Below the pieces are notes generated by a model that had not been told where the DNA came from, did not search any database, and saw only the letters and a list, made by a program, of their open reading frames with translations. From Auanema rhodensis (taxonomy: Eukaryota; Animalia; Nematoda), in the NCBI GenBank assembly GCA_964057225.1, contig OZ059896.1:4836001-4900000 (forward strand): a stretch of 64,000 bases of DNA, read 5' to 3'. This document shows positions 1 through 55,300 of the stretch, piece by piece (within the stretch, counting starts at the first letter, position 1; each line of letters opens with the position of its first letter). A program made the translations under genes and the position numbers.

Positions 1-3000
1 TGACTTTCAAATTTAAGTGAACTTTAATGTATGCTAATTAAATGTACACGTGATGTGCACTTGGTATGTAACTCGCTTCACGTGAAAGATAAAGAGATGC
101 GGTTTTGAAAATTAGATTCCCCATGTCCATATTAGTCTAAAAACAACATTTTATTGATATTGGTGCATGGTAACCATGACTTTGAAATTTACGTGAACTT
201 TAATTTAAGCTAATTAAATGTACACGTGATGTGCACTTGGTATGTAACTCGCTTCACGTGAAAGATAAAGAGATGCGGTTTTTAAAAATAGATTCTCCAT
301 GTCCATATTACTCTAAAAACAAATTTTTATTGATATTGGTGCATGGTAACCATGAGTTTGAAATTTACGTGAACTTTAATTTATGCTAATTAAATGTACA
401 CGTGATGTGCACTTGGTATGTAACTCGCTTCACGTGAAAGATAAAGAGATGCGGTTTTCAAAATTAGATTCTCCATGTCCATATTAGTCTAAAAACAAAT
501 TTTTATTGATATTGGTGCATGGTAACCATGAGTTTGAAATTTACGTGAACTTTAATTTATGCTAATTAAATGTACACGTGATGTGCACTTGGTATGTAAC
601 TCGCTTCACGTGAAAGATAAAGAGATGCGGTTTTCAAAATTAGATTCCCCATGTCCATATTAGTCTAAAAACAAAATTTTATTGATATTGGTGCATGGTA
701 ACCATGACTTTGAAATTTACGTGAACTTTAATTTATGCTAATTAAATGTACACGTGATGTGCACTTGGTATGTAACTCGCTTCACGTGAAAGATAAAGAG
801 ATGCGGTTTTTAAAATTAGATTCTCCATGTCCATATTAGTCTAAAAACAAATTTTTATTGATATTGGTGTATGGTAACCATGAGTTTGAAATTTACGTGA
901 ACTTTAATTTATGCTAATTAAATGTACACGTGATGTGCACTTGGTATGTAACTCGCTTCACGTGAAAAATAAAGAGATGCGGTTTTCAAAATTAGATTCC
1001 CCATGTCCATATTAGTCTAAAAACAAAATTTTATTGATATTGGTGCATGGTAACCATGACTTTGAAATTTACGTGAACTTTAATTTATGCTAATTAAATG
1101 TACACGTGATGTGCACTTGGTATGTAACTCGCTTCACGTGAAAGATAAAGAGATGCGGTTTTCATAATTAGATTCCCCATGTCCATATTAGTCTAAAAAC
1201 AAAATTTTATTGATATTGGTGCATGGTAACCATGACTTTGAAATTTACGTGAACTTTGATTTATGCTAATTAAATGTACACGTGATGTGCACTTGGTATG
1301 TAACTCGCTTCACGTGAAAGATAAAGAGATGCGTTTTTCAAATATAGATTCCCCATGTCCATATTAGTCTAAAAACAAATTTTTATTGATATTGGTGCAT
1401 GGTAACCATGAGTTTGAAATTTACGTGAACTTTAATTTATGCTAATTAAATGTACACGGGATGTGCACTTGGTATGTAACTCGCTTCACGTGAAAGATAA
1501 AGAGATGCGGTTTTCAAAATTAGATTCCCCATGTCCATATTAGTCTAAAAACAAAATTTTATTGATATTGCTGCATGGTAACCATGACTTTCAAATTTAA
1601 GTGAACTTTAATTTATGCTAATTAAATGTACACGTGATGTGCACTTGGTATGTAACTCGCTTCACGTGAAAGATAAAGAGATGCGGTTTTGAAAATTAGA
1701 TTCCCCATGTCCATATTAGTCTAAAAACAAATTTTTATTGATATTGGTGCATGGTAACCATGACTTTGAAATTTAAGTGAACTTTAATTTATGCTAATTA
1801 AATGTACACGTGATGTGCACTTGGTATGTAACTCGCACGTGAAAGATAAAGAGATGCGGTTTTCAAAATTAGATTCCCCATGTCCATATTAGTCTAAAAA
1901 CAAAATTGTATTGATATTGGTGCATGGTAACCATGAGTTTGAAATTTACGTGAACTTTAATTTATGCTAATTAAATGTACACGTGATGTGCACTTGGTAT
2001 GTAACTCGCTTCACGTGAAAGATAAAGAGATGCGGTTTTCAAAATTAGATTCTCCATGTCCATATTAGTCTAAAAACAAATTTTTATTGATATTGGTGCA
2101 TGGTAACCATGAGTTTGAAATTTACGTGAACTTTAATTTATGCTAATTAAATGTACACGTGATGTGCACTTGGTATGTAACTCGATTCACGTGAAAGATA
2201 AAGAGATGCGGTTTTTAAAAATAGATTCTCCATGTCCATATTACTCTAAAAACAAATTTTTATTGATATTGGTGTATGGTAACCATGAGTTTGAAGTTTA
2301 CGTGAACTTTAATTTATGCTAATTAAATGTACACGTGATGTGCACTTGGTATGTAACTCGCTTCACGTGAAAGATAAAGAGATGCGGTTTTCAAAATTAG
2401 ATTCCCCATGTCCATATTAGTCTAAAAACAAAATTTCATTGATATTGGTGCATGGTAACCATGACTTTGAAATTTACGTGAACTTTAATTTATGCTAATT
2501 AAATGTACACGTGATGTGCACTTGGTATGTAACTCGCTTCACGTGAAAAATAAAGAGATGCGGTTTTCAAAATTAGATTCCCCATGTCCATATTAGTCTA
2601 AAAACAAAATTTTATTGATATTGGTGCATGGTAACCATGACTTTGAAATTTACGTGAACTTTAATTTATGCTAATTAAATGTACACGTGATGTGCACTTG
2701 GTATGTAACTCGCTTCACGTGAAAGATAAAGAGATGCGGTTTTCATAATTAGATTCTCCATGTCCATATTAGTCTAAAAACAAATTTTTATTGATATTGG
2801 TTCATGGTAACCATGAGTTTGAAATTTACGTGAACTTTAATTTATGCTAATTAAATGTACACGTGATGTGCACTTGGTATGTAACTCGCTTCACGTGAAA
2901 GATAAAGAGATGCGGTTTTCAAAATTAGATTCCCCATGTCCATATTAGTCTAAAAACAAAATTTTATTGATATTGGTGCATGGTAACCATGACTTTGAAA

Positions 3001-6000
3001 TTTACGTGAACTTTAATTTATGCTAATTAAATGTGCACGTGATGTGCACTTGGTATGTAACTCGCTTCACGTGAAAGATAAAGAGATGCGTTTTTCAAAA
3101 TTAGATTCCCCATGTCCATATTAGTCTAAAAACAAATTTTTATTGATATTGGTGCATGGTAACCATGAGTTTGAAATTTATGTGAACTTTAATTTATGCT
3201 AATTAAATGTACACGTGATGTGCACTTGGTATGTAACTCGCTTCACGTGAAAGATAAAGAGATGCGGTTTTCAAAATTAGATTCCCCATGTCCATATTAG
3301 TCTAAAAACAAAATTTTATTGATATTGATGCATGGTAACCATGACTTTGAAATTTAAGTGAACTTTAATTTATGCTAATTAAATGTACACGTGATGTGCA
3401 CTTGGTATGTAACTCGCTTCACGTGAAAGATAAAGAGATGCGGTTTTCAAAATTAGATTCCCCATGTCCATATTAGTCTAAAAACAAATTTTTATTGATA
3501 TTGGTGCATGGTAACCATGAGTTTGAAATTTACGTGAACTTTAATTTATGCTAATTAAATGTACACGGGATGTGCACTTGGTATGTAACTCGCTTCACGT
3601 GAAAGATAAAGAGATGCGGTTTTCAAAATTAGATTCCCCATGTCCATATTAGTCTAAAAACAAAATTTTATTGATATTGGTGCATGGTAACCATGAGTTT
3701 GAAATTTACGTGAACTTTAATTTATGCTAATTAAATGTACACGTGATGTGCACTTGGTATGTAACTCGCTTCACGTGAAAGATAAAGAGATGCGGTTTTT
3801 AAAAATAGATTCTCCATGTCCATATTACTCTAAAAACAAATTTTTATTGATATTGGTGCATGGTAACCATGAGTTTGAAATTTACGTGAACTTTAATTTA
3901 TGCTAATTAAATGTACACGTGATGTGCACTTGGTATGTAACTCGCTTCACGTGAAAGATAAAGAGATGCGGTTTTCAAAATTAGATTCTCCATGTCCATA
4001 TTAGTCTAAAAACAAATTTTTATTGATATTGGTGCATGGTAACCATGAGTTTGAAATTTACGTGAACTTTAATTTATGCTAATTAAATGTACACGTGATG
4101 TGCACTTGGTATGTAACTCGCTTCACGTGAAAGATAAAGAGATGCGGTTTTCAAAATTAGATTCCCCATGTCCATATTAGTCTAAAAACAAAATTTTATT
4201 GATATTGGTGCATGGTAACCATGACTTTGAAATTTACGTGAACTTTAATTTATGCTAATTAAATGTACACGTGATGTGCACTTGGTATGTAACTCGCTTC
4301 ACGTGAAAGATAAAGAGATGCGTTTTTCAAATATAGATTCCCCATGTCCATATTAGTCTAAAAACAAATTTTTATTGATATTGCTGCATGGTAACCATGA
4401 CTTTCAAATTTAAGTGAACTTTAATGTATGCTAATTAAATGTACACGTGATGTGCACTTGGTATGTAACTCGCTTCACGTGAAAGATAAAGAGATGCGGT
4501 TTTGAAAATTAGATTCCCCATGTCCATATTAGTCTAAAAACAAAATTTTATTGATATTGGTGCATGGTAACCATGACTTTGAAATTTACGTGAACTTTAA
4601 TTTATGCTAATTAAATGTACACGTGATGTGCACTTGGTATGTAACTCGCTTCACGTGAAAGATAAAGAGATGCGGTTTTTAAAAATAGATTCTCCATGTC
4701 CATATTACTCTAAAAACAAATTTTTATTGATATTGGTGCATGGTAACCATGAGTTTGAAATTTACGTGAACTTTAATTTATGCTAATTAAATGTACACGT
4801 GATGTGCACTTGGTATGTAACTCGCTTCACGTGAAAGATAAAGAGATGCGGTTTTCAAAATTAGATTCTCCATGTCCATATTAGTCTAAAAACAAATTTT
4901 TATTGATATTGGTGCATGGTAACCATGAGTTTGAAATTTACGTGAACTTTAATTTATGCTAATTAAATGTACACGTGATGTGCACTTGGTATGTAACTCG
5001 CTTCACGTGAAAGATAAAGAGATGCGGTTTTCAAAATTAGATTCCCCATGTCCATATTAGTCTAAAAACAAAATTTTATTGATATTGGTGCATGGTAACC
5101 ATGACTTTGAAATTTACGTGAACTTTAATTTATGCTAATTAAATGTACACGTGATGTGCACTTGGTATGTAACTCGCTTCACGTGAAAGATAAAGAGATG
5201 CGGTTTTTAAAATTAGATTCTCCATGTCCATATTAGTCTAAAAACAAATTTTTATTGATATTGGTGTATGGTAACCATGAGTTTGAAATTTACGTGAACT
5301 TTAATTTATGCTAATTAAATGTACACGTGATGTGCACTTGGTATGTAACTCGCTTCACGTGAAAAATAAAGAGATGCGGTTTTCAAAATTAGATTCCCCA
5401 TGTCCATATTAGTCTAAAAACAAAATTTTATTGATATTGGTGCATGGTAACCATGACTTTGAAATTTACGTGAACTTTAATTTATGCTAATTAAATGTAC
5501 ACGTGATGTGCACTTGGTATGTAACTCGCTTCACGTGAAAGATAAAGAGATGCGGTTTTCATAATTAGATTCCCCATGTCCATATTAGTCTAAAAACAAA
5601 ATTTTATTGATATTGGTGCATGGTAACCATGACTTTGAAATTTACGTGAACTTTGATTTATGCTAATTAAATGTACACGTGATGTGCACTTGGTATGTAA
5701 CTCGCTTCACGTGAAAGATAAAGAGATGCGTTTTTCAAATATAGATTCCCCATGTCCATATTAGTCTAAAAACAAATTTTTATTGATATTGGTGCATGGT
5801 AACCATGAGTTTGAAATTTACGTGAACTTTAATTTATGCTAATTAAATGTACACGGGATGTGCACTTGGTATGTAACTCGCTTCACGTGAAAGATAAAGA
5901 GATGCGGTTTTCAAAATTAGATTCCCCATGTCCATATTAGTCTAAAAACAAAATTTTATTGATATTGGTGCATGGTAACCATGACTTTGAAATTTAAGTG

Positions 6001-9000
6001 AACTTTAATTTATGCTAATTAAATGTACACGTGATGTGCACTTGGTATGTAACTCGCACGTGAAAGATAAAGAGATGCGGTTTTCAAAATTAGATTCCCC
6101 ATGTCCATATTAGTCTAAAAACAAAATTGTATTGATATTGGTGCATGGTAACCATGAGTTTGAAATTTACGTGAACTTTAATTTATGCTAATTAAATGTA
6201 CACGTGATGTGCACTTGGTATGTAACTCGCTTCACGTGAAAGATAAAGAGATGCGGTTTTCAAAATTAGATTCTCCATGTCCATATTAGTCTAAAAACAA
6301 ATTTTTATTGATATTGGTGCATGGTAACCATGAGTTTGAAATTTACGTGAACTTTAATTTATGCTAATTAAATGTACACGTGATGTGCACTTGGTATGTA
6401 ACTCGATTCACGTGAAAGATAAAGAGATGCGGTTTTTAAAAATAGATTCTCCATGTCCATATTACTCTAAAAACAAATTTTTATTGATATTGGTGTATGG
6501 TAACCATGAGTTTGAAGTTTACGTGAACTTTAATTTATGCTAATTAAATGTACACGTGATGTGCACTTGGTATTTAACTCGCTTCACGTGAAAGATAAAG
6601 AGATGCGGTTTTCAAAATTAGATTCCCCATGTCCATATTAGTCTAAAAACAAAATTTCATTGATATTGGTGCATGGTAACCATGACTTTGAAATTTACGT
6701 GAACTTTAATTTATGCTAATTAAATGTACACGTGATGTGCACTTGGTATGTAACTCGCTTCACGTGAAAAATAAAGAGATGCGGTTTTCAAAATTAGATT
6801 CCCCATGTCCATATTAGTCTAAAAACAAAATTTTATTGATATTGGTGCATGGTAACCATGACTTTGAAATTTACGTGAACTTTAATTTATGCTAATTAAA
6901 TGTACACGTGATGTGCACTTGGTATGTAACTCGCTTCACGTGAAAGATAAAGAGATGCGGTTTTCATAATTAGATTCTCCATGTCCATATTAGTCTAAAA
7001 ACAAATTTTTATTGATATTGGTTCATGGTAACCATGAGTTTGAAATTTACGTGAACTTTAATTTATGCTAATTAAATGTACACGTGATGTGCACTTGGTA
7101 TGTAACTCGCTTCACGTGAAAGATAAAGAGATGCGGTTTTCAAAATTAGATTCCCCATGTCCATATTAGTCTAAAAACAAAATTTTATTGATATTGGTGC
7201 ATGGTAACCATGACTTTGAAATTTACGTGAACTTTAATTTATGCTAATTAAATGTACACGTGATGTGCACTTGGTATGTAACTCGCTTCACGTGAAAGAT
7301 AAAGAGATGCGTTTTTCAAAATTAGATTCCCCATGTCCATATTAGTCTAAAAACAAATTTTTATTGATATTGGTGCATGGTAACCATGAGTTTGAAATTT
7401 ATGTGAACTTTAATTTATGCTAATTAAATGTACACGTGATGTGCACTTGGTATGTAACTCGCTTCACGTGAAAGATAAAGAGATGCGGTTTTCAAAATTA
7501 GATTCCCCATGTCCATATTAGTCTAAAAACAAAATTTTATTGATATTGATGCATGGTAACCATGACTTTGAAATTTAAGTGAACTTTAATTTATGCTAAT
7601 TAAATGTACACGTGATGTGCACTTGGTATGTAACTCGCTTCACGTGAAAGATAAAGAGATGCGGTTTTCAAAATTAGATTCCCCATGTCCATATTAGTCT
7701 AAAAACAAATTTTTATTGATATTGGTGCATGGTAACCATGAGTTTGAAATTTACGTGAACTTTAATTTATGCTAATTAAATGTACACGGGATGTGCACTT
7801 GGTATGTAACTCGCTTCACGTGAAAGATAAAGAGATGCGGTTTTCAAAATTAGATTCCCCATGTCCATATTAGTCTAAAAACAAAATTTTATTGATATTG
7901 GTGCATGGTAACCATGAGTTTGAAATTTACGTGAACTTTAATTTATGCTAATTAAATGTACACGTGATGTGCACTTGGTATGTAACTCGCTTCACGTGAA
8001 AGATAAAGAGATGCGGTTTTTAAAAATAGATTCTCCATGTCCATATTACTCTAAAAACAAATTTTTATTGATATTGGTGCATGGTAACCATGAGTTTGAA
8101 ATTTACGTGAACTTTAATTTATGCTAATTAAATGTACACGTGATGTGCACTTGGTATGTAACTCGCTTCACGTGAAAGATAAAGAGATGCGGTTTTCAAA
8201 ATTAGATTCTCCATGTCCATATTAGTCTAAAAACAAATTTTTATTGATATTGGTGTATGGTAACCATGAGTTTGAAGTTTACGTGAACTTTAATTTATGC
8301 TAATTAAATGTACACGTGATGTGCACTTGGTATGTAACTCGCTTCACGTGAAAGATAAAGAGATGCGGTTTCCAAAATTAGATTCCCCATGTCCATATTA
8401 GTCTAAAAACAAAATTTTATTGATATTGGTGCATGGTAACCATGACTTTGAAATTTACGTGAACTTTAATTTATGCTAATTAAATGTACACGTGATGTGC
8501 ACTTGGTATGTAACTCGCTTCACGTGAAAGATAAAGAGATGCGGTTTTCATAATTAGATTCTCCATGTCCATATTAGTCTAAAAACAAATTTTTATTGAT
8601 ATTGGTTCATGGTAACCATGAGTTTGAAATTTACGTGAACTTTAATTTATGCTAATTAAATGTACACGTGATGTGCACTTGGTATGTAACTCGCTTCACG
8701 TGAAAGATAAAGAGATGACGTTTTCAAAATTAGATTCCCCATGTCCATATTAGTCTAAAAACAAAATTTTATTGATATTGGTGCATGGTAACCATGACTT
8801 TGAAATTTACGTGAACTTTAATTTATGCTAATTAAATGTACACGTGATGTGCACTTGGTATGTAACTCGCTTCACGTGAAAGATAAAGAGATGCGTTTTT
8901 CAAAATTAGATTCCCCATGTCCATATTAGTCTAAAAACAAATTTTTATTGATATTGGTGCATGGTAACCATGAGTTTGAAATTTATGTGAACTTTAATTT

Positions 9001-12000
9001 ATGCTAATTAAATGTACACGTGATGTGCACTTGGTATGTAACTCGCTTCACGTGAAAGATAAAGAGATGCGGTTTTCAAAATTAGATTCCCCATGTCCAT
9101 ATTAGTCTAAAAACAAAATTTTATTGATATTGATGCATGGTAACCATGACTTTGAAATTTAAGTGAACTTTAATTTATGCTAATTAAATGTACACGTGAT
9201 GTGCACTTGGTATGTAACTCGCTTCACGTGAAAGATAAAGAGATGCGGTTTTCAAAATTAGATTCCCCATGTCCATATTAGTCTAAAAACAAATTTTTAT
9301 TGATATTGGTTCATGGTAACCATGAGTTTGAAATTTACGTGAACTTTAATTTATGCTAATTAAATGTACACGTGATGTGCACTTGGTATGTAACTCGCTT
9401 CACGTGAAAGATAAAGAGATGCGGTTTTCAAAATTAGATTCCCCATGTCCATATTAGTCTAAAAACAAAATTTTATTGATATTGGTGCATGGTAACCATG
9501 ACTTTGAAATTTACGTGAACTTTAATTTATGCTAATTAAATGTACACGTGATGTGCACTTGGTATGTAACTCGCTTCACGTGAAAGATAAAGAGATGCGG
9601 TTTTTAAAATTAGATTCTCCATGTCCATATTAGTCTAAAAACAAATTTTTATTGATATTGGTGTATGGTAACCATGAGTTTGAAATTTACGTGAACTTTA
9701 ATTTATGCTAATTAAATGTACACGTGATGTGCACTTGGTATGTAACTCGCTTCACGTGAAAAATAAAGAGATGCGGTTTTCAAAATTAGATTCCCCATGT
9801 CCATATTAGTCTAAAAACAAAATTTTATTGATATTGGTGCATGGTAACCATGACTTTGAAATTTACGTGAACTTTGATTTATGCTAATTAAATGTACACG
9901 TGATGTGCACTTGGTATGTAACTCGCTTCACGTGAAAGATAAAGAGATGCGTTTTTCAAATATAGATTCCCCATGTCCATATTAGTCTAAAAACAAATTT
10001 TTATTGATATTGGTGCATGGTAACCATGAGTTTGAAATTTACGTGAACTTTAATTTATGCTAATTAAATGTACACGTGATGTGCACTTGGTATGTAACTC
10101 GCTTCACGTGAAAGATAAAGAGATGCGGTTTTCAAAATTAGATTCCCCATGTCCATATTAGTCTAAAAACAAAATTTTATTGATATTGCTGCATGGTAAC
10201 CATGACTTTCAAATTTAAGTGAACTTTAATTTATGCTAATTAAATGTACACGTGATGTGCACTTGGTATGTAACTCGCTTCACGTGAAAGATAAAGAGAT
10301 GCGGTTTTGAAAATTAGATTCCCCATGTCCATATTAGTCTAAAAACAAATTTTTATTGATATTGGTGCATGGTAACCATGACTTTGAAATTTACGTGAAC
10401 TTTAATTTATGCTAATTAAATGTACACGTGATGTGCACTTGGTATGTAACTCGCTTCACGTGAAAGATAAAGAGATGACGTTTTCAAAATTAGATTCCCC
10501 ATGTCCATATTAGTCTAAAAACAAATTTTTATTGATATTGGTGCATGGTAACCATGACTTTGAAATTTACGTGAACTTTAATTTATGCTAATTAAATGTA
10601 CACGTGATGTGCACTTGGTATGTAACTCGCTTCACGTGAAAGATAAAGAGATGCGGTTTTCAAAATTAGATTCCCCATGTCCATATTAGTCTAAAAACAA
10701 ATTTTTATTGATATTGGTTCATGGTAACCATGACTTTGAAATTTACGTGAACTTTAATTTATGCTAATTAAATGTACACGTGATGTGCACTTGGTATGTA
10801 ACTCGCTTCACGTGAAAGATAAAGAGATGACGTTTTCAAAATTAGATTCCCCATGTCCATATTAGTCTAAAAACAAATTTTTATTGATATTGGTTCATGC
10901 TAACCATGACTTTGAAATTTACGTGAACTTTAATTTATGCTAATTAAATGTACACGTGATGTGCACTTGGTATGTAACTCGCTTCACGTGAAAGATAAAG
11001 AGATGCGGTATTCAAAATTAGATTCCCCATGTCCATATTAGTCTAAAAACAAAATTTTATTGATATTGATGCATGGTAACCATGACTTTGAAATTTACGT
11101 GAACTTTAATTTATGCTAATTAAATGTACACGTGATGTGCACTTGGTATGTAACTCGCTTCACGTGAAAGATAAAGAGATGCGGTTTTCAAAATTAGATT
11201 CCCCATGTCCATATTAGTCTAAAAACAAATTTTTATTGATATTGGTTCATGGTAACCATGACTTTGAAATTTACGTGAACTTTAATTTATGCTAATTAAA
11301 TGTACACGTGATGTGCACTTGGTATGTAACTCGCTTCACGTGAAAGATAAAGAGATGCGGTTTTCAAAATTAGATTCTCCATGTCCATATTAGTCTAAAA
11401 ACAAATTTTTATTGATATTGGTGCATGGTAACCATGACTTTGAAATTTACGTGAACTTTAATTTATGCTAATTAAATGTACACGTGATGTGCACTTGGTA
11501 TGTAACTCGCTTCACGTGAAAGATAAAGAGATGCGGTTTTCAAAATTAGATTCCCCATGTCCATATTAGTCTAAAAACAAAATTGTATTGATATTGGTGC
11601 ATGGTAACCATGAGTTTGAAATTTACGTGAACTTTAATTTATGCTAATTAAATGTACACGTGATGTGCACTTGGTATGTAACTCGATTCACGTGAAAGAT
11701 AAAGAGATGCGGTTTTTAAAATAGATTCTCCATGTCCATATTACTCTAAAAACAAATTTTTATTGATATTGGTGCATGGTAACCATGAGTTTGAAATTTA
11801 CGTGAACTTTAATTTATGCTAATTAAATGTACACGTGATGTGCACTTGGTATGTAACTCGCTTCACGTGAAAGATAAAGAGATGCGGTTTTCAAAATTAG
11901 ATTCTCCATGTCCATATTAGTCTAAAAACAAATTTTTATTGATATTGGTGCATGGTAACCATGAGTTTGAAATTTACGTGAACTTTAATTTATGCTAATT

Positions 12001-13399
12001 AAATGTACACGTGATGTGCACTTGGTATGTAACTCGATTCACGTGAAAGATAAAGAGATGCGGTTTTTAAAAATAGATTCTCCATGTCCATATTACTCTA
12101 AAAACAAATTTTTATTGATATTGGTGTATGGTAACCATGAGTTTGAAGTTTACGTGAACTTTAATTTATGCTAATTAAATGTACACGTGATGTGCACTTG
12201 GTATGTAACTCGCTTCACGTGAAAGATAAAGAGATGCGGTTTTCAAAATTAGATTCCCCATGTCCATATTAGTCTAAAAACAAAATTTCATTGATATTGG
12301 TGCATGGTAACCATGACTTTGAAATTTACGTGAACTTTAATTTATGCTAATTAAATGTACACGTGATGTGCACTTGGTATGTAACTCGCTTCACGTGAAA
12401 AATAAAGAGATGCGGTTTTCAAAATTAGATTCCCCATGTCCATATTAGTCTAAAAACAAAATTTTATTGATATTGGTGCATGGTAACCATGACTTTGAAA
12501 TTTACGTGAACTTTAATTTATGCTAATTAAATGTACACGTGATGTGCACTTGGTATGTAACTCGCTTCACGTGAAAGATAAAGAGATGCGGTTTTCATAA
12601 TTAGATTCTCCATGTCCATATTAGTCTAAAAACAAATTTTTATTGATATTGGTTCATGGTAACCATGAGTTTGAAATTTACGTGAACTTTAATTTATGCT
12701 AATTAAATGTACACGTGATGTGCACTTGGTATGTAACTCGCTTCACGTGAAAGATAAAGAGATGCGGTTTTCAAAATTAGATTCCCCATGTCCATATTAG
12801 TCTAAAAACAAAATTTTATTGATATTGGTGCATGGTAACCATGACTTTGAAATTTACGTGAACTTTAATTTATGCTAATTAAATGTACACGTGATGTGCA
12901 CTTGGTATGTAACTCGCTTCACGTGAAAGATAAAGAGATGCGTTTTTCAAAATTAGATTCCCCATGTCCATATTAGTCTAAAAACAAATTTTTATTGATA
13001 TTGGTGCATGGTAACCATGAGTTTGAAATTTATGTGAACTTTAATTTATGCTAATTAAATGTACACGTGATGTGCACTTGGTATGTAACTCGCTTCACGT
13101 GAAAGATAAAGAGATGCGGTTTTCAAAATTAGATTCCCCATGTCCATATTAGTCTAAAAACAAAATTTGATTGATATTGATGCATGGTAACCATGACTTT
13201 GAGATTTAAGTGAACTTTAATTTATGCTAATTAAATGTACACGTGATGTGCACTTGGTATGTAACTCGCTTCACGTGAAAGATAAAGAGATGCGGTTTTC
13301 AAAATTAGATTCCCCATGTCCATATTAGTCTAAAAACAAATTTTTATTGATATTGGTGCATGGTAACCATGACTTTGAAATTTACGTGAACTTTAACTT
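1..13399 (+). repeat. Outer variant domain (subfamily A), left
   Basis: Variants CATGAGTTTG, GATTCTCC, TTACTCT, CAAAATTTT, GTGAAAAAT, ACACGGGA, and 173-bp monomers with a 3-bp deletion at ~1836 and ~6057. Confidence 0.85.
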
Positions 13400-15599
13400 A
13401 TGCTAATTAAATGTACACGTGATGTGCACTTGGTATGTAACTCGCCTCACGTGAAAGATAACGAGATGCGGTTTTCAAAATTAGATTCCCCATGTCCATA
13501 TGAGTCTAAAAACAAATTTTTATTGATATTGGTTCATGGTAACCATGATTTTGAAATTTACGTGAACTTTACTTTATGCTAATTAAATGTACACGTGATG
13601 TGCACTTGGTATGTAACTCGCTTCGCGTGAAAGATAAATAGATGCGGTTTTCAAAATTAGATTCCCCATGTCCATATTAGTCTAAAAACAAATTTTTATT
13701 GATATTGGTTCATGGTAACCATGACTTTGAAAATTACGTGAACTTTAATTTATGCTAATTAAATGTACACGTGATGTGCACTTGGTATGTAACTCGCTTC
13801 ACGTGGAAGATAAAGAGATGCGGTTTTCAAAATTAGATTCCCCATGTTCATATTAGTCTAAAAACAAATTTTTATTGATATTGGTGCATGGTAACCATGA
13901 CTTTGAAATTTACGTGAACTTTAATTTATGCTAATTGAATGTACACGTGATGTGCACTTGGTATGTGACTCGCTTCACGTGAAAGATAAAGAGATGCGGT
14001 TTGCAAAATTAGATTCCCCATGTCCATATTAGTCTAAAAACAAATTTTTATTGATATTGGTTCATGGTAACCATGACTTTGAAATTTACGTGAACTTTAA
14101 TTTATGCTAAATAAATGTACACGTGATGTGCACCTGGAATGTAACTCGCTTCACGTGAAAGATAAAGAGATGCGGTTTTCAAAATTAGATTCCCCATGTC
14201 CATATTAGTCTAAAAACAAATTTTTATTGATATTGGTTCATGCTAACCATGACTTTGAAATTTACGTGAACTTTAATTTATGCTAATTGAATGTACACGT
14301 GATGTGCACTTGGTATGTAACTCGCTTCACGTGAAAGATAAAGAGATGCGGTTTTCGAAATTAGATTCCCCATGTCCATATTAGTCTAAAAACAAATTTT
14401 TATTGATATTGGTGCATGGTAACCATGACTTTGAAATTTACGTGAACTTTAATTTATGCTAATTAAATGTACACGTGATGTGCACTTGGTATGTAACTCG
14501 CTTCACGTGAAAGATAAAGAGATGCGGTTTTCAAAATTAGATTCCCCATGTCCATATTAGTCTAAAAACAAATTTTTATTGATATTGGTTCATGGTAACC
14601 ATGACTTTGAAATTTACGTGAACTTTAATTTATGCTAATTAAATGTACACGTGATGTGCACTTGGTATGTAACTCGCTTCACGTGAAAGATAAAGAGATG
14701 CGGTTTTCATAATTAGATTCCCCATGTCCATATTAGTCTAAAAACAAAATTTTATTGATATTGGTGCATGGTAACCATGACTTTGAAATTTACGTGAACT
14801 TTAATTTATGCTAATTAAATGTACACGTGATGTGCACTTGGTATGTAACTCGCTTCACGTGAAAGATAAAGAGATGACGTTTTCAAAATTAGATTCCCCA
14901 TGTCCATATTAGTCTAAAAACAAATTTTTATTGATATTGGTGCATGGTAACCATGACTTTGAAATTTACGTGAACTTTAATTTATGCTAATTAAATGTAC
15001 ACGTGATGTGCACTTGGTATGTAACTCGCTTCACGTGAAAGATAAAGAGATGCGGTTTTCAAAATTAGATTCCCCATGTCCATATTAGTCTAAAAACAAA
15101 TTTTTATTGATATTGGTTCATGGTAATCATGACTTTGAAATTTACGTGAACTTTAATTTATTCTAATTAAATGTACACGTGATGTGCACTTGGTATGTAA
15201 CTCGCTTCACGTGAAAGATAAAGAGATGCGGTTTTCAAAATTAGATTCACCATGTCCATATTAGTCTAAAAACAAATTTTTATTGATATTGGTGCATGGT
15301 AACCATGACTTTGAAATTTACGTGAACTTTAATTTATGCTAATTAAATGTACACGTGATGTGCACTTGGTATGTAACTCGCTTCACGTGAAATATAAAGA
15401 GATGCGGTTTTCAAAATTAGATTCCCCATGTCCATATTAGTCTAAAAACAAATTTTTATTGATATTGGTTCATGGTAACCATGACTTTGAAATTTACGTG
15501 AACTTTAATTTATGCTAATTAAATGTACACGTGATGTGCACTTGGTATGTATTTCGCTTCACGTGAAAGATAAAGAGATGCGGTTTTCAAAATTAGATT

Positions 15600-25410: not shown

Positions 25411-25411
25411 T

Positions 25412-43300: not shown

Positions 43301-46300
43301 TTTATCTTTCACGTGAAGCGAGTTACATACCAAGTGCACATCACGTGTACATTTAATTAGCATAAATTAAAGTTCACTTAAATTTGAAAGTCATGGTTAC
43401 CATGCAGCAATATCAATAAAATTTTGTTTTTAGACTAATATGGACATGGGGAATCTAATTTTGAAAACCGCATCTCTTTATCTTTCACGTGAAGCGAGTT
43501 ACATACCAAGTGCACATCACGTGTACATTTAATTAGCATAAATTAAAGTTCACGTAAATTTCAAACTCATGGTTACCATGCACCAATATCAATAAAAATT
43601 TGTTTTTAGACTAATATGGACATGGGGAATCTATATTTGAAAAACGCATCTCTTTATCTTTCACGTGAAGCGAGTTACATACCAAGTGCACATCACGTGT
43701 ACATTTAATTAGCATAAATCAAAGTTCACGTAAATTTCAAAGTCATGGTTACCATGCACCAATATCAATAAAATTTTGTTTTTAGACTAATATGGACATG
43801 GGGAATCTAATTTTGAAAACCGCATCTCTTTATTTTTCACGTGAAGCGAGTTACATACCAAGTGCACATCACGTGTACATTTAATTAGCATAAATTAAAG
43901 TTCACGTAAATTTCAAACTCATGGTTACCATACACCAATATCAATAAAAATTTGTTTTTAGACTAATATGGACATGGAGAATCTAATTTTAAAAACCGCA
44001 TCTCTTTATCTTTCACGTGAAGCGAGTTACATACCAAGTGCACATCACGTGTACATTTAATTAGCATAAATTAAAGTTCACGTAAATTTCAAAGTCATGG
44101 TTACCATGCACCAATATCAATAAAATTTTGTTTTTAGACTAATATGGACATGGGGAATCTAATTTTGAAAACCGCATCTCTTTATCTTTCACGTGAAGCG
44201 AGTTACATACCAAGTGCACATCACGTGTACATTTAATTAGCATAAATTAAAGTTCACGTAAATTTCAAACTCATGGTTACCATGAACCAATATCAATAAA
44301 AATTTGTTTTTAGACTAATATGGACATGGGGAATCTAATTTTGAAAACCGCATCTCTTTATCTTTCACGTGAAGCGAGTTACATACCAAGTGCACATCAC
44401 GTGTACATTTAATTAGCATAAATTAAAGTTCACTTAAATTTCAAAGTCATGGTTACCATGCATCAATATCAATAAAATTTTGTTTTTAGACTAATATGGA
44501 CATGGGGAATCTAATTTTGAAAACCGCATCTCTTTATCTTTCACGTGAAGCGAGTTACATACCAAGTGCACATCACGTGTACATTTAATTAGCATAAATT
44601 AAAGTTCACATAAATTTCAAACTCATGGTTACCATGCACCAATATCAATAAAAATTTGTTTTTAGACTAATATGGACATGGGGAATCTAATTTTGAAAAA
44701 CGCATCTCTTTATCTTTCACGTGAAGCGAGTTACATACCAAGTGCACATCACGTGTACATTTAATTAGCATAAATTAAAGTTCACGTAAATTTCAAAGTC
44801 ATGGTTACCATGCACCAATATCAATAAAATTTTGTTTTTAGACTAATATGGACATGGGGAATCTAATTTTGAAAACCGCATCTCTTTATCTTTCACGTGA
44901 AGCGAGTTACATACCAAGTGCACATCACGTGTACATTTTATTAGCATAAATTAAAGTTCACGTAAATTTCAAACTCATGGTTACCATGAACCAATATCAA
45001 TAAAAATTTGTTTTTAGACTAATATGGACATGGAGAATCTAATTATGAAAACCGCATCTCTTTATCTTTCACGTGAAGCGAGTTACATACCAAGTGCACA
45101 TCACGTGTACATTTAATTAGCATAAATTAAAGTTCACGTAAATTTCAAAGTCATGGTTACCATGCACCAATATCAATAAAATTTTGTTTTTAGACTAATA
45201 TGGACATGGGGAATCTAATTTTGGAAACCGCATCTCTTTATCTTTCACGTGAAGCGAGTTACATACCAAGTGCACATCACGTGTACATTTAATTAGCATA
45301 AATTAAAGTTCACGTAAACTTCAAACTCATGGTTACCATACACCAATATCAATAAAAATTTGTTTTTAGACTAATATGGACATGGAGAATCTAATTTTGA
45401 AAACCGCATCTCTTTATCTTTCACGTGAAGCGAGTTACATACCAAGTGCACATCACGTGTACATTTAATTAGCATAAATTAAAGTTCACGTAAATTTCAA
45501 ACTCATGGTTACCATGCACCAATATCAATAAAAATTTGTTTTTAGAGTAATATGGACATGGAGAATCTATTTTTAAAAACCGCATCTCTTTATCTTTCAC
45601 GTGAAGCGAGTTACATACCAAGTGCACATCACGTGTACATTTAATTAGCATAAATTAAAGTTCACGTAAATTTCAAACTCATGGTTACCATGCACCAATA
45701 TCAATAAAATTTTGTTTTTAGACTAATATGGACATGGGGAATCTAATTTTGAAAACCGCATCTCTTTATCTTTCACGTGAAGCGAGTTACATACCAAGTG
45801 CACATCCCGTGTACATTTAATTAGCATAAATTAAAGTTCACGTAAATTTCAAACTCATGGTTACCATGCACCAATATCAATAAAAATTTGTTTTTAGACT
45901 AATATGGACATGGGGAATCTAATTTTGAAAACCGCATCTCTTTATCTTTCACGTGAAGCGAGTTACATACCAAGTGCACATCACGTGTACATTTAATTAG
46001 CATAAATTAAAGTTCACTTAAATTTCAAAGTCATGGTTACCATGCATCAATATCAATAAAATTTTGTTTTTAGACTAATATGGACATGGGGAATCTAATT
46101 TTGAAAACCGCATCTCTTTATCTTTCACGTGAAGCGAGTTACATACCAAGTGCACATCACGTGTACATTTAATTAGCATAAATTAAAGTTCACATAAATT
46201 TCAAACTCATGGTTACCATGCACCAATATCAATAAAAATTTGTTTTTAGACTAATATGGACATGGGGAATCTAATTTTGAAAACCGCATCTCTTTATCTT

Positions 46301-49300
46301 TCACGTGAAGCGAGTTACATACCAAGTGCACATCACGTGTACATTTAATTAGCATAAATTAAAGTTCACGTAAATTTCAAACTCATGGTTACCATGAACC
46401 AATATCAATAAAAATTTGTTTTTAGACTAATATGGACATGGAGAATCTAATTATGAAAACCGCATCTCTTTATCTTTCACGTGAAGCGAGTTACATACCA
46501 AGTGCACATCACGTGTACATTTAATTAGCATAAATTAAAGTTCACGTAAATTTCAAAGTCATGGTTACCATGCACCAATATCAATAAAATTTTGTTTTTA
46601 GACTAATATGGACATGGGGAATCTAATTTTGGAAACCGCATCTCTTTATCTTTCACGTGAAGCGAGTTACATACCAAGTGCACATCACGTGTACATTTAA
46701 TTAGCATAAATTAAAGTTCACGTAAACTTCAAACTCATGGTTACCATACACCAATATCAATAAAAATTTGTTTTTAGACTAATATGGACATGGAGAATCT
46801 AATTTTGAAAACCGCATCTCTTTATCTTTCACGTGAAGCGAGTTACATACCAAGTGCACATCACGTGTACATTTAATTAGCATAAATTAAAGTTCACGTA
46901 AATTTCAAACTCATGGTTACCATGCACCAATATCAATAAAAATTTGTTTTTAGAGTAATATGGACATGGAGAATCTATTTTTAAAAACCGCATCTCTTTA
47001 TCTTTCACGTGAAGCGAGTTACATACCAAGTGCACATCACGTGTACATTTAATTAGCATAAATTAAAGTTCACGTAAATTTCAAACTCATGGTTACCATG
47101 CACCAATATCAATAAAATTTTGTTTTTAGACTAATATGGACATGGGGAATCTAATTTTGAAAACCGCATCTCTTTATCTTTCACGTGAAGCGAGTTACAT
47201 ACCAAGTGCACATCCCGTGTACATTTAATTAGCATAAATTAAAGTTCACGTAAATTTCAAACTCATGGTTACCATGCACCAATATCAATAAAAATTTGTT
47301 TTTAGACTAATATGGACATGGGGAATCTAATTTTGAAAACCGCATCTCTTTATCTTTCACGTGAAGCGAGTTACATACCAAGTGCACATCACGTGTACAT
47401 TTAATTAGCATAAATTAAAGTTCACTTAAATTTCAAAGTCATGGTTACCATGCATCAATATCAATAAAATTTTGTTTTTAGACTAATATGGACATGGGGA
47501 ATCTAATTTTGAAAACCGCATCTCTTTATCTTTCACGTGAAGCGAGTTACATACCAAGTGCACATCACGTGTACATTTAATTAGCATAAATTAAAGTTCA
47601 CATAAATTTCAAACTCATGGTTACCATGCACCAATATCAATAAAAATTTGTTTTTAGACTAATATGGACATGGGGAATCTAATTTTGAAAAACGCATCTC
47701 TTTATCTTTCACGTGAAGCGAGTTACATACCAAGTGCACATCACGTGTACATTTAATTAGCATAAATTAAAGTTCACGTAAATTTCAAAGTCATGGTTAC
47801 CATGCACCAATATCAATAAAATTTTGTTTTTAGACTAATATGGACATGGGGAATCTAATTTTGAAAACCGCATCTCTTTATCTTTCACGTGAAGCGAGTT
47901 ACATACCAAGTGCACATCACGTGTACATTTAATTAGCATAAATTAAAGTTCACGTAAATTTCAAACTCATGGTTACCATGAACCAATATCAATAAAAATT
48001 TGTTTTTAGACTAATATGGACATGGAGAATCTAATTATGAAAACCGCATCTCTTTATCTTTCACGTGAAGCGAGTTACATACCAAGTGCACATCACGTGT
48101 ACATTTAATTAGCATAAATTAAAGTTCACGTAAATTTCAAAGTCATGGTTACCATGCACCAATATCAATAAAATTTTGTTTTTAGACTAATATGGACATG
48201 GGGAATCTAATTTTGAAAACCGCATCTCTTTATTTTTCACGTGAAGCGAGTTACATACCAAGTGCACATCACGTGTACATTTAATTAGCATAAATTAAAG
48301 TTCACGTAAATTTCAAAGTCATGGTTACCATGCACCAATATCAATGAAATTTTGTTTTTAGACTAATATGGACATGGGGAATCTAATTTTGAAAACCGCA
48401 TCTCTTTATCTTTCACGTGAAGCGAGTTACATACCAAGTGCACATCACGTGTACATTTAATTAGCATAAATTAAAGTTCACGTAAACTTCAAACTCATGG
48501 TTACCATACACCAATATCAATAAAAATTTGTTTTTAGAGTAATATGGACATGGAGAATCTATTTTTAAAAACCGCATCTCTTTATCTTTCACGTGAATCG
48601 AGTTACATACCAAGTGCACATCACGTGTACATTTAATTAGCATAAATTAAAGTTCACGTAAATTTCAAACTCATGGTTACCATGCACCAATATCAATAAA
48701 AATTTGTTTTTAGACTAATATGGACATGGAGAATCTAATTTTGAAAACCGCATCTCTTTATCTTTCACGTGAAGCGAGTTACATACCAAGTGCACATCAC
48801 GTGTACATTTAATTAGCATAAATTAAAGTTCACGTAAATTTCAAACTCATGGTTACCATGCACCAATATCAATACAATTTTGTTTTTAGACTAATATGGA
48901 CATGGGGAATCTAATTTTGAAAACCGCATCTCTTTATCTTTCACGTGCGAGTTACATACCAAGTGCACATCACGTGTACATTTAATTAGCATAAATTAAA
49001 GTTCACTTAAATTTCAAAGTCATGGTTACCATGCACCAATATCAATAAAATTTTGTTTTTAGACTAATATGGACATGGGGAATCTATATTTGAAAAACGC
49101 ATCTCTTTATCTTTCACGTGAAGCGAGTTACATACCAAGTGCACATCACGTGTACATTTAATTAGCATAAATCAAAGTTCACGTAAATTTCAAAGTCATG
49201 GTTACCATGCACCAATATCAATAAAATTTTGTTTTTAGACTAATATGGACATGGGGAATCTAATTATGAAAACCGCATCTCTTTATCTTTCACGTGAAGC

Positions 49301-52300
49301 GAGTTACATACCAAGTGCACATCACGTGTACATTTAATTAGCATAAATTAAAGTTCACGTAAATTTCAAAGTCATGGTTACCATGCACCAATATCAATAA
49401 AATTTTGTTTTTAGACTAATATGGACATGGGGAATCTAATTTTGAAAACCGCATCTCTTTATTTTTCACGTGAAGCGAGTTACATACCAAGTGCACATCA
49501 CGTGTACATTTAATTAGCATAAATTAAAGTTCACGTAAATTTCAAACTCATGGTTACCATACACCAATATCAATAAAAATTTGTTTTTAGACTAATATGG
49601 ACATGGAGAATCTAATTTTAAAAACCGCATCTCTTTATCTTTCACGTGAAGCGAGTTACATACCAAGTGCACATCACGTGTACATTTAATTAGCATAAAT
49701 TAAAGTTCACGTAAATTTCAAAGTCATGGTTACCATGCACCAATATCAATAAAATTTTGTTTTTAGACTAATATGGACATGGGGAATCTAATTTTGAAAA
49801 CCGCATCTCTTTATCTTTCACGTGAAGCGAGTTACATACCAAGTGCACATCACGTGTACATTTAATTAGCATAAATTAAAGTTCACGTAAATTTCAAACT
49901 CATGGTTACCATGCACCAATATCAATAAAAATTTGTTTTTAGACTAATATGGACATGGAGAATCTAATTTTGAAAACCGCATCTCTTTATCTTTCACGTG
50001 AAGCGAGTTACATACCAAGTGCACATCACGTGTACATTTAATTAGCATAAATTAAAGTTCACGTAAATTTCAAACTCATGGTTACCATGCACCAATATCA
50101 ATAAAAATTTGTTTTTAGAGTAATATGGACATGGAGAATCTATTTTTAAAAACCGCATCTCTTTATCTTTCACGTGAAGCGAGTTACATACCAAGTGCAC
50201 ATCACGTGTACATTTAATTAGCATAAATTAAAGTTCACGTAAATTTCAAAGTCATGGTTACCATGCACCAATATCAATAAAATTTTGTTTTTAGACTAAT
50301 ATGGACATGGGGAATCTAATTTTCAAAACCGCATCTCTTTATCTTTCACGTGAAGCGAGTTACATACCAAGTGCACATCACGTGTACATTTAATTAGCAT
50401 ACATTAAAGTTCACTTAAATTTGAAAGTCATGGTTACCATGCAGCAATATCAATAAAAATTTGTTTTTAGACTAATATGGACATGGGGAATCTATATTTG
50501 AAAAACGCATCTCTTTATCTTTCACGTGAAGCGAGTTACATACCAAGTGCACATCACGTGTACATTTAATTAGCATAAATTAAAGTTCACGTAAATTTCA
50601 AAGTCATGGTTACCATGCACCAATATCAATAAAATTTTGTTTTTAGACTAATATGGACATGGGGAATCTAATTTTGAAAACCGCATCTCTTTATCTTTCA
50701 CGTGAAGCGAGTTACATACCAAGTGCACATCACGTGTACATTTAATTAGCATAAATTAAAGTTCACGTAAATTTCAAACTCATGGTTACCATGCACCAAT
50801 ATCAATAAAAATTTGTTTTTAGACTAATATGGACATGGAGAATCTAATTTTGAAAACCGCATCTCTTTATCTTTCACGTGAAGCGAGTTACATACCAAGT
50901 GCACATCACGTGTACATTTAATTAGCATAAATTAAAGTTCACGTAAATTTCAAACTCATGGTTACCATGCACCAATATCAATAAAAATTTGTTTTTAGAG
51001 TAATATGGACATGGAGAATCTATTTTTAAAAACCGCATCTCTTTATCTTTCACGTGAAGCGAGTTACATACCAAGTGCACATCACGTGTACATTTAATTA
51101 GCATAAATTAAAGTTCACGTAAATTTCAAACTCATGGTTACCATGCACCAATATCAATAAAATTTTGTTTTTAGACTAATATGGACATGGGGAATCTAAT
51201 TTTGAAAACCGCATCTCTTTATCTTTCACGTGAAGCGAGTTACATACCAAGTGCACATCCCGTGTACATTTAATTAGCATAAATTAAAGTTCACGTAAAT
51301 TTCAAACTCATGGTTACCATGCACCAATATCAATAAAAATTTGTTTTTAGACTAATATGGACATGGGGAATCTAATTTTGAAAACCGCATCTCTTTATCT
51401 TTCACGTGAAGCGAGTTACATACCAAGTGCACATCACGTGTACATTTAATTAGCATAAATTAAAGTTCACTTAAATTTCAAAGTCATGGTTACCATGCAT
51501 CAATATCAATAAAATTTTGTTTTTAGACTAATATGGACATGGGGAATCTAATTTTGAAAACCGCATCTCTTTATCTTTCACGTGAAGCGAGTTACATACC
51601 AAGTGCACATCACGTGTACATTTAATTAGCATAAATTAAAGTTCACATAAATTTCAAACTCATGGTTACCATGCACCAATATCAATAAAAATTTGTTTTT
51701 AGACTAATATGGACATGGGGAATCTAATTTTGAAAAACGCATCTCTTTATCTTTCACGTGAAGCGAGTTACATACCAAGTGCACATCACGTGCACATTTA
51801 ATTAGCATAAATTAAAGTTCACGTAAATTTCAAAGTCATGGTTACCATGCACCAATATCAATAAAATTTTGTTTTTAGACTAATATGGACATGGGGAATC
51901 TAATTTTGAAAACCGCATCTCTTTATCTTTCACGTGAAGCGAGTTACATACCAAGTGCACATCACGTGTACATTTAATTAGCATAAATTAAAGTTCACGT
52001 AAATTTCAAACTCATGGTTACCATGAACCAATATCAATAAAAATTTGTTTTTAGACTAATATGGACATGGAGAATCTAATTATGAAAACCGCATCTCTTT
52101 ATCTTTCACGTGAAGCGAGTTACATACCAAGTGCACATCACGTGTACATTTAATTAGCATAAATTAAAGTTCACGTAAATTTCAAAGTCATGGTTACCAT
52201 GCACCAATATCAATAAAATTTTGTTTTTAGACTAATATGGACATGGGGAATCTAATTTTGAAAACCGCATCTCTTTATTTTTCACGTGAAGCGAGTTACA

Positions 52301-55300
52301 TACCAAGTGCACATCACGTGTACATTTAATTAGCATAAATTAAAGTTCACGTAAATTTCAAAGTCATGGTTACCATGCACCAATATCAATGAAATTTTGT
52401 TTTTAGACTAATATGGACATGGGGAATCTAATTTTGAAAACCGCATCTCTTTATCTTTCACGTGAAGCGAGTTACATACCAAGTGCACATCACGTGTACA
52501 TTTAATTAGCATAAATTAAAGTTCACGTAAACTTCAAACTCATGGTTACCATACACCAATATCAATAAAAATTTGTTTTTAGAGTAATATGGACATGGAG
52601 AATCTATTTTTAAAAACCGCATCTCTTTATCTTTCACGTGAATCGAGTTACATACCAAGTGCACATCACGTGTACATTTAATTAGCATAAATTAAAGTTC
52701 ACGTAAATTTCAAACTCATGGTTACCATGCACCAATATCAATAAAAATTTGTTTTTAGACTAATATGGACATGGAGAATCTAATTTTGAAAACCGCATCT
52801 CTTTATCTTTCACGTGAAGCGAGTTACATACCAAGTGCACATCACGTGTACATTTAATTAGCATAAATTAAAGTTCACGTAAATTTCAAACTCATGGTTA
52901 CCATGCACCAATATCAATACAATTTTGTTTTTAGACTAATATGGACATGGGGAATCTAATTTTGAAAACCGCATCTCTTTATCTTTCACGTGCGAGTTAC
53001 ATACCAAGTGCACATCACGTGTACATTTAATTAGCATAAATTAAAGTTCACTTAAATTTCAAAGTCATGGTTACCATGCACCAATATCAATAAAAATTTG
53101 TTTTTAGACTAATATGGACATGGGGAATCTAATTTTCAAAACCGCATCTCTTTATCTTTCACGTGAAGCGAGTTACATACCAAGTGCACATCACGTGTAC
53201 ATTTAATTAGCATAAATTAAAGTTCACTTAAATTTGAAAGTCATGGTTACCATGCAGCAATATCAATAAAATTTTGTTTTTAGACTAATATGGACATGGG
53301 GAATCTAATTTTGAAAACCGCATCTCTTTATCTTTCACGTGAAGCGAGTTACATACCAAGTGCACATCCCGTGTACATTTAATTAGCATAAATTAAAGTT
53401 CACGTAAATTTCAAACTCATGGTTACCATGCACCAATATCAATAAAAATTTGTTTTTAGACTAATATGGACATGGGGAATCTATATTTGAAAAACGCATC
53501 TCTTTATCTTTCACGTGAAGCGAGTTACATACCAAGTGCACATCACGTGTACATTTAATTAGCATAAATCAAAGTTCACGTAAATTTCAAAGTCATGGTT
53601 ACCATGCACCAATATCAATAAAATTTTGTTTTTAGACTAATATGGACATGGGGAATCTAATTATGAAAACCGCATCTCTTTATCTTTCACGTGAAGCGAG
53701 TTACATACCAAGTGCACATCACGTGTACATTTAATTAGCATAAATTAAAGTTCACGTAAATTTCAAAGTCATGGTTACCATGCACCAATATCAATAAAAT
53801 TTTGTTTTTAGACTAATATGGACATGGGGAATCTAATTTTGAAAACCGCATCTCTTTATTTTTCACGTGAAGCGAGTTACATACCAAGTGCACATCACGT
53901 GTACATTTAATTAGCATAAATTAAAGTTCACGTAAATTTCAAACTCATGGTTACCATACACCAATATCAATAAAAATTTGTTTTTAGACTAATATGGACA
54001 TGGAGAATCTAATTTTAAAAACCGCATCTCTTTATCTTTCACGTGAAGCGAGTTACATACCAAGTGCACATCACGTGTACATTTAATTAGCATAAATTAA
54101 AGTTCACGTAAATTTCAAAGTCATGGTTACCATGCACCAATATCAATAAAATTTTGTTTTTAGACTAATATGGACATGGGGAATCTAATTTTGAAAACCG
54201 CATCTCTTTATCTTTCACGTGAAGCGAGTTACATACCAAGTGCACATCACGTGTACATTTAATTAGCATAAATTAAAGTTCACGTAAATTTCAAACTCAT
54301 GGTTACCATGCACCAATATCAATAAAAATTTGTTTTTAGACTAATATGGACATGGAGAATCTAATTTTGAAAACCGCATCTCTTTATCTTTCACGTGAAG
54401 CGAGTTACATACCAAGTGCACATCACGTGTACATTTAATTAGCATAAATTAAAGTTCACGTAAATTTCAAACTCATGGTTACCATGCACCAATATCAATA
54501 AAAATTTGTTTTTAGAGTAATATGGACATGGAGAATCTATTTTTAAAAACCGCATCTCTTTATCTTTCACGTGAAGCGAGTTACATACCAAGTGCACATC
54601 ACGTGTACATTTAATTAGCATAAATTAAAGTTCACGTAAATTTCAAAGTCATGGTTACCATGCACCAATATCAATAAAATTTTGTTTTTAGACTAATATG
54701 GACATGGGGAATCTAATTTTCAAAACCGCATCTCTTTATCTTTCACGTGAAGCGAGTTACATACCAAGTGCACATCACGTGTACATTTAATTAGCATACA
54801 TTAAAGTTCACTTAAATTTGAAAGTCATGGTTACCATGCAGCAATATCAATAAAAATTTGTTTTTAGACTAATATGGACATGGGGAATCTATATTTGAAA
54901 AACGCATCTCTTTATCTTTCACGTGAAGCGAGTTACATACCAAGTGCACATCACGTGTACATTTAATTAGCATAAATTAAAGTTCACGTAAATTTCAAAG
55001 TCATGGTTACCATGCACCAATATCAATAAAATTTTGTTTTTAGACTAATATGGACATGGGGAATCTAATTTTGAAAACCGCATCTCTTTATCTTTCACGT
55101 GAAGCGAGTTACATACCAAGTGCACATCACGTGTACATTTAATTAGCATAAATTAAAGTTCACGTAAATTTCAAACTCATGGTTACCATGCACCAATATC
55201 AATAAAAATTTGTTTTTAGACTAATATGGACATGGAGAATCTAATTTTGAAAACCGCATCTCTTTATCTTTCACGTGAAGCGAGTTACATACCAAGTGCA

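Follow-up and report, generated by a model that had tools for sequence, protein, structure and literature searches.

A probable fold-back inverted duplication in an AT-1-like satellite array of the nematode Auanema

Introduction

Large palindromes are known from sex chromosomes; those of the human Y chromosome (P1-P8) have arms from tens of kb upward that share more than 99.9% identity, with kb-scale spacers, genes, and gene conversion acting over millions of years. Several other systems resemble the locus described here. Fold-back inverted duplications formed at hairpin-capped breaks have been studied in yeast (sae2/mre11), where the junctions lie at inverted repeats of 3-15 bp (PMC10622511), and in human chromosomes that carry an inverted duplication together with a terminal deletion, where the inverted microhomology at the junctions measures 2-8 bp and all 21 junctions that were sequenced contain a single-copy spacer (PMC3907307). 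Replicative template switching, whether by a fork U-turn, by microhomology-mediated break-induced replication (MMBIR), by fork stalling and template switching (FoSTeS) or by origin-dependent inverted-repeat amplification (ODIRA), is another route; PMC11790251 describes template switching at short inverted repeats for which a chromosome break is unnecessary, and a stalled-fork model from fission yeast is mentioned in PMC3907307. Inverted duplications also occur at damaged chromosome ends in Caenorhabditis elegans, a holocentric species (PMC8034613). Lastly, hundreds of strand switches have been catalogued in human beta-satellite and HSat3, and it has been suggested that they are by-products of array expansion (10.64898/2026.07.22.740206). 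Here, we analyse 64,000 nt of the nematode Auanema rhodensis (assembly GCA_964057225.1, contig OZ059896.1, positions 4,836,001 to 4,900,000; hereafter "the window", in which all coordinates are given). In this window, a + oriented mirror copy of at least 25 kb is joined to a - oriented satellite array by way of a single-copy monomer flanked by CACGTG. We put at roughly 0.7 the probability that the structure is genuine and fixed in the germline, an inverted duplication formed by fold-back (a hairpin-type template switch) inside the terminal satellite AT-1.

The locus resembles each of these systems in part. It shares with the yeast and human fold-backs its inverted arms, its short spacer and its inverted microhomology, and it differs from them in that the duplicated DNA is a homogeneous satellite, the loop has precisely the length of one unit of the repeat, and the microhomology is a self-complementary hexamer that is present twice in the unit; moreover, it appears to be fixed in a natural germline. 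A short inverted repeat, a spacer and an inverted copy are likewise features of replicative template switching. The replicative models differ in that a second switch, back to the direct orientation, yields an inverted triplication; here, the upstream flank lies outside the window. With the C. elegans chromosome ends formed under telomere dysfunction (PMC8034613), the locus has in common a holocentric nematode host and inverted duplicated fragments at damaged ends. Those cases are laboratory survivors that lack telomerase, and involve unique subtelomeric DNA with kb-scale fragments at fusion sites, in contrast to the Auanema palindrome, which is natural and probably lies inside a multi-megabase terminal satellite. 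The strand switches of human satellites are similar in that orientation changes within otherwise homogeneous arrays; the passages on them in 10.64898/2026.07.22.740206 name no junction mechanism, whereas in the window a duplication can be demonstrated from unique variants, the junction suggests a way in which it could have arisen, and the array is non-centromeric. Finally, the palindrome differs from those of the Y chromosome in being pure satellite with a spacer of 170 bp, and gene conversion is, in this case, only a rival explanation.

Results

The window is a single satellite array with one strand switch

The entire 64-kb window is one tandem repeat (100% satellite), with an AT-rich unit of 176 bp (32% GC). 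Tandem Repeats Finder (TRF) places the + monomers at 1-25395 and the - monomers at 25390-64000, with a period of 176 for both. The strand switch lies between 25392 and 25393, where both GC skew and AT skew reverse sign, and there is no second switch anywhere in the window. We cut the array into 363 whole monomers, which represent 88 distinct sequences. The hexamer CACGTG is found twice per unit, at a distance of 32 bp; with 699 copies for ~363 monomers, both hexamers are nearly always retained. The first CACGTG belongs to a cluster of overlapping 6-bp palindromes (TGTACA, CACGTG and GTGCAC within 18 nt) that occupies consensus positions 4-21 (counted from AAATGTACACGTG), and the second belongs to a 10-bp palindrome, TTCACGTGAA, at positions 38-47 in the same numbering; both stretches rank among the least variable parts of the unit. 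At a larger scale, the outer parts of the arms (46000-64000 and 1-5741) are built from a higher-order repeat of 25 monomers (4,397 bp, one 173-bp monomer included) whose copies are 99.9-100% alike, and towards the centre, over 20 kb in each arm, there is just a loose periodicity of 9, 11 and 20 monomers.

The arms on either side of the switch are an inverted duplication

A preliminary description of this DNA, made from the sequence alone, had claimed that the strand switch goes beyond an inversion and reflects an inverted duplication. Indeed, the eight rare motifs on which that description drew each have a single forward copy on the left and a single reverse-complemented copy on the right, and their order is mirrored. 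A chained mirror alignment pairs the whole of the left arm (1-25392) with 25393-54827. Across the 25,016 bases that align, the arms differ by 19 substitutions and are thus 99.92% identical; random pairs of one left and one right monomer differ at 5.3 of their 176 positions, which corresponds to 97.0% identity. Monomers at mirror positions are identical in 128 of 141 pairs, compared with 2.2% of random pairs. This is the opposite of what the preliminary description had named as evidence against a duplication, namely that mirror-position monomers would be no more similar than random ones.

The order of the monomers is mirrored as well as their sequence. When the arms are aligned by monomer type, the score is 215 for the mirror order and -94 or -107 for non-mirrored orders, and arrays with shuffled monomer order (n = 30) have a mean score of -80 and a maximum of -65. 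Among 1,231 window-unique 24-mers, 784 make up 392 mirror pairs, and these pairs are confined to four anti-diagonals. Twenty-one monomer types have exactly one copy in each arm and none in the rest of the 64 kb, with 20 of the 21 in mirror order. Since variants that are otherwise unique in the window recur a single time in each arm, and in mirrored order, the symmetry is that of an inverted duplication, rather than that of a periodic array that has simply been inverted.

How tightly the pairing is constrained varies along the arms. For left-arm positions 8800-17600 and 20241-25392, the only match at 99.8-100% is the mirror partner; for these same blocks, other registers, direct or inverted, mostly reach no more than 98.6%, with values of 99.2-99.8% in two blocks. 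Across left-arm positions 1-7900, the mirror diagonal ties with diagonals displaced outward by one or two of the 4,397-bp higher-order repeats, and the register is fixed by one unique variant alone (3031/51788). The symmetry had also been described as reaching the edge of the window. The mirror chain does include position 1, subject to these ties with repeat-shifted diagonals over 1-7900.

The junction has a single-copy spacer flanked by CACGTG

The apparent axis is the midpoint of a CACGTG (25390-25395), and the exact palindrome around it is just 18 + 18 bp, broken on the left side by a 6-bp insertion, CGTACG. In the consensus of the unit, the cluster of TGTACA, CACGTG and GTGCAC coincides with this point. 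The insertion forms an 8-bp palindrome, ACGTACGT, and sits 15 nt past the putative priming site. It may have been templated: an ACGTAAATT stretch is ~17 nt away in the unit, although it is not an unambiguous donor.

Two registers can be compared for the pairing of the arms. In the spacerless register (i + j = 50779), the five innermost monomers have 2, 7, 7, 2 and 1 mismatches, i.e. 19 in total, whereas in the register that is shifted by one monomer (i + j = 50955; 50961 within the insertion) the same five monomers have 0 mismatches. Over 17662-25368, identity is 99.91% in the shifted register and 96.9% in the spacerless one, which rules out the latter as the register of the duplication. Given that the one-monomer-shifted register is perfect over the five innermost monomers, the duplication has a single-copy spacer of 170 bp. 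The spacer monomer is in the orientation of the right arm; the right arm and the spacer therefore form one unbroken array, with a 3' CACGTG on the bottom strand. Priming on the same strand predicts that 25389 pairs with 25572, and this is the register observed. Moreover, the central 776 nt, when folded as single-stranded DNA, are predicted to take the loop register. We infer that the spacer between the arms is a former hairpin loop, although it may instead be a monomer gained later. The palindrome had initially been called nearly spacerless; that wording fits the literal sequence, with its 18 + 18 bp, but not the duplication, whose register includes a 170-bp loop.

Differences between the arms indicate a recent event in relative terms

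The mirror chain identifies five blocks that are present in one arm only: blocks of 880, 1,936 and 1,408 bp in the right arm, and two blocks of 176 bp in the left arm. One further difference, of 1 bp, falls in a homopolymer (11711 on the left, 42054 on the right). Within the right arm only, 31600-33359 and 36352-38111 are a direct duplication with a shift of 4,752 bp and 100% identity. Without a single difference from the adjacent sequence, this right-only duplication must postdate the palindrome, and it shows that unequal exchange went on after the palindrome was formed.

Twelve of the 19 substitutions set a window-unique base in one arm against the consensus base, or a shared variant, in the other. 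The left arm holds nine of these unique bases and the right arm three, and the one nearest to the axis is 1.8 kb from it; arm-specific differences include 23571/27384, 21449/29506, 21349/29606 and 21074-5/29880-1. Counting the pair at 21074-5 as one event, and adding the insertion and the homopolymer deletion, there are 10 private events on the left and 3 on the right, an imbalance that is borderline by a one-sided binomial test (~0.05). This surplus of private changes in the left arm is suggestive of error-prone copying of that arm. Six of the 19 differences involve variants that are found in other monomers, and these are clustered near the block boundaries.

The divergence between the arms, 0.08%, is about the same as that between adjacent direct copies of the higher-order repeat (0-0.1%), such that the event is about as old as the last amplification of the array. 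The preliminary description had inferred a recent event, and this holds in relative terms only; ~13 private small changes and five monomer-block differences have accrued since. A rough age of ~1e5 generations would follow from 12 private substitutions over the two 25-kb arms at a mutation rate similar to that of C. elegans (~2e-9 per site per generation), but we set it aside, since it depends too heavily on assumptions about assembly errors, error-prone copying and gene conversion.

The satellite matches the germline-restricted repeat AT-1

A 17-mer of the 176-bp repeat matches the full text of a preprint on Auanema rhodense. The 28-nt fluorescence in situ hybridization probe described there, AT-1_Cy3, has 327 exact occurrences in the window (198 + 129), to be compared with 363 typed monomers, and the 176-bp unit falls inside the range reported for AT-1, 167-504 nt. 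By sequence, then, the satellite is a match to AT-1, the germline-restricted repeat of the autosome ends of Auanema rhodense. According to the preprint, all six autosomes carry a multi-megabase block at either end, filled by AT-1 and one further repeat; these terminal blocks are restricted to the germline, being eliminated in somatic cells from the 12-cell stage, and ~61% of the genome is eliminated in total. Inversions or palindromes within the repeat blocks are not described in the text of the preprint. The assembly reported there, which to judge from the probe match is the likely source of the window, is of the inbred line APS4; it was built with hifiasm from PacBio HiFi reads (inserts of ~15 kb), and the eliminated DNA is covered at ~29x. 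In short-read runs, the satellite (window positions 25218-25567) is found at huge depth under three different organism labels, from which it follows that it is common to several strains or species.

The positions of the arms, the junction elements and the arm-specific blocks are given in Table 1.

Table 1. Coordinates of the palindrome and its parts in the 64,000-nt window
Feature	Position	Strand	Basis or remark
Left arm, 176-bp monomers; putative new inverted copy	1..25389	+	TRF, mirror chain, monomer typing; crosses the left edge of the window
6-bp insertion CGTACG, left arm only, window-unique	25369..25374	+	Motif counts, sequence
CACGTG at apparent axis; putative 3'-terminal inverted microhomology	25390..25395	.	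Sequence
Single-copy loop or spacer, 170 bp (one monomer minus the hexamer), commonest monomer type	25396..25565	-	Register test, type map
Second CACGTG, 176 bp from the first; putative internal annealing partner	25566..25571	.	Sequence
Right arm; putative original array	25572..54827	-	Mirrors the left arm to window position 1
Left-only single monomer	5742..5917	+	Mirror chain
Left-only single monomer	11275..11450	+	Mirror chain
Region holding the 5- and 11-monomer right-only blocks	33294..37127	-	Mirror chain, type map
Right-only 5-monomer block	33294..34173	-	Local tandem duplication; boundaries ambiguous within repeated units
Right-only 11-monomer block	35192..37127	-	Local tandem duplication; boundaries ambiguous within repeated units
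Right-only 8-monomer block, local tandem duplication	46284..47691	-	Mirror chain, type map
Continuation of the - array, 25-monomer (4,397-bp) higher-order repeats	54828..64000	-	Could mirror sequence upstream of the window

Discussion

We propose that the palindrome arose by fold-back within the array. In this model, breakage of the array, or collapse of a replication fork in it, would have left a 3' single strand ending in CACGTG, which would have paired, on its own strand or on that of the sister, with the CACGTG that lies one monomer back. Synthesis from this site would have copied the array backwards, with the 6-bp insertion as an early error, and the duplication and the strand switch would have been produced together in one event. 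Afterwards, whole monomers would have been gained and lost through unequal exchange within the arms, and point mutations would have built up. We infer from the orientation of the loop monomer that the right array is the original and the left arm is the copy. The initiating lesion may have been either a hairpin-capped double-strand break or a fork U-turn of the MMBIR or ODIRA kind; these predict the same local sequence and are inseparable from sequence. Two aspects of the junction favour the fold-back model. CACGTG centres account for just 2 of the 176 positions of the unit, so a random junction would seldom fall there, and with CACGTG at both ends of the loop, a one-step doubling of the array and reversal of its strand, as the preliminary description had it, is the simplest reading. 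For the fold-back itself there is precedent in the 3-15-bp inverted repeats of yeast and the 2-8-bp microhomologies of human junctions described above, and, for holocentric chromosomes, in the damaged ends of C. elegans.

Rhabditid nematodes are holocentric, and the AT-1 array is consequently not a centromere. It had been suggested that the event is a candidate mechanism for the orientation switches of centromeric arrays. The fold-back does provide a route to a strand switch, but the centromeric framing does not apply directly to AT-1 on holocentric chromosomes. The structure is without evident function. It is probably tolerated because it lies in gene-poor DNA that is discarded from the soma, and on holocentric chromosomes.

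Several points limit the support for this model. Among the contigs listed from four short-read sets over 25218-25567, none bridges 25392, an outcome compatible with either a real or an artefactual junction. The far end of the left arm is outside the window, so that a terminal deletion, a healing junction or a second switch would be out of sight. The additional central monomer may stem from later unequal exchange instead of an original loop, given that the arms contain two other single-monomer indels. Lastly, a stem of 6 bp with a loop of ~170 nt makes a weak fold-back.

Of the alternatives, the one to which we give most weight, though we consider it unlikely, is that the palindrome is an artefact of sequencing or assembly: a chimeric fold-back read or a hairpin filled in during end repair, or an assembler that re-traversed the same array, or an allelic one, backwards. 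Satellite arrays are difficult to assemble at ~29x with 15-kb reads, the copy-number differences between blocks of the arms resemble assembly noise in higher-order repeats, and the 1-bp difference between the arms falls in a homopolymer. An artefact of this sort would, however, be expected to give exact symmetry, but here the centre is offset by one monomer and only its left side has the 6-bp insertion. It would also be expected to give identical arms, but the arms differ by 19 substitutions and by block indels, and the nearest of the 12 window-unique single-base differences is close enough to the axis to be reachable by junction-spanning reads. Moreover, traversal of an overlap graph from + to - requires reads that truly contain the strand switch. 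The likely source assembly is from PacBio HiFi data, and a dedicated survey found virtually no fold-back artefact reads in HiFi genomic DNA (PMC12870357); that the sequenced line is inbred weakens the case for a join of two haplotypes. Far less probable than an artefact is a plain inversion of an existing higher-order repeat array, with a mirror that stems from periodicity only. The ties between the mirror diagonal and the 4,397-bp-shifted diagonals over left-arm positions 1-7900 are compatible with such an inversion, but the blocks whose sole match at 99.8-100% is the mirror partner rule it out for the inner ~17 kb of the arms, and the once-per-arm monomer types, with 20 of the 21 in mirror order, speak against it as well.

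Two further alternatives accept the palindrome as real and differ from the fold-back model in its history. Marginally less likely than an artefact, in our view, is a fusion of sister chromatids (U-type) that left no spacer, or a template switch precisely at CACGTG, with one monomer beside the axis gained afterwards by unequal exchange. The literal sequence is spacerless, with a perfect palindrome centred in CACGTG, and single-monomer indels do exist, two of them in the left arm. Set against this, approximately three single-monomer events in ~144 monomers would give a chance of only ~2% that one of them affected the first monomer at the axis, whereas a loop bounded by microhomology is directly predicted by fold-back annealing, and a spacer is the rule in the human junctions (21/21; PMC3907307). 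We regard as somewhat less likely again the possibility that the palindrome is old and that its arms have been kept near-identical by arm-to-arm gene conversion, as in the palindromes of sex chromosomes. An identity of 99.92% over tens of kb does resemble that of converted palindromes, and the six of 19 differences that are shared variants near block boundaries are what conversion or exchange tracts might leave. Nonetheless, five whole-monomer block differences remain unhomogenised, and since divergence between the arms equals that between adjacent direct repeats, recent amplification suffices to explain the identity.

The fold-back mechanism and the existence of strand switches in satellites were already known. 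The novelty lies in a natural case whose arms measure ~25-29 kb, in which unique variants prove the duplication and the fold-back marks of the junction are preserved, within a repeat that matches DNA eliminated by the animal from its soma. The origin of the strand switches catalogued in satellites has mostly been guessed at, and the junction described here, in the fold-back model, is a concrete and testable route by which a single event both extends an array and reverses its orientation. Arms of ~25-29 kb separated by 170 bp form a structure that would be expected to be unstable, and its survival bears on the tolerance of damage in eliminated DNA and on the growth of that DNA. More tentatively, we speculate that fold-backs at the short palindromes of the unit, in combination with breakage and re-fusion or with break-induced copying, could be a main engine that expands the terminal satellites of Auanema and scrambles their orientation. 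The breaks might be seeded at CACGTG, and giant palindromes might persist because the DNA is discarded from the soma and the chromosomes are holocentric.

Short-read depth has a minimum beside the junction. In the 12-bp bin at 25374-25385, the depth is 2744, 3.8, 1797 and 909 in the four sets, compared with 1e6-1e7 in the flanks; relative to the flanks, the depth of this bin just left of the axis ranges from ~1e-6 to 1e-3 among runs. The low signal in the bin could come from many similar junctions genome-wide, from library chimeras, or from monomers that bear the insertion.

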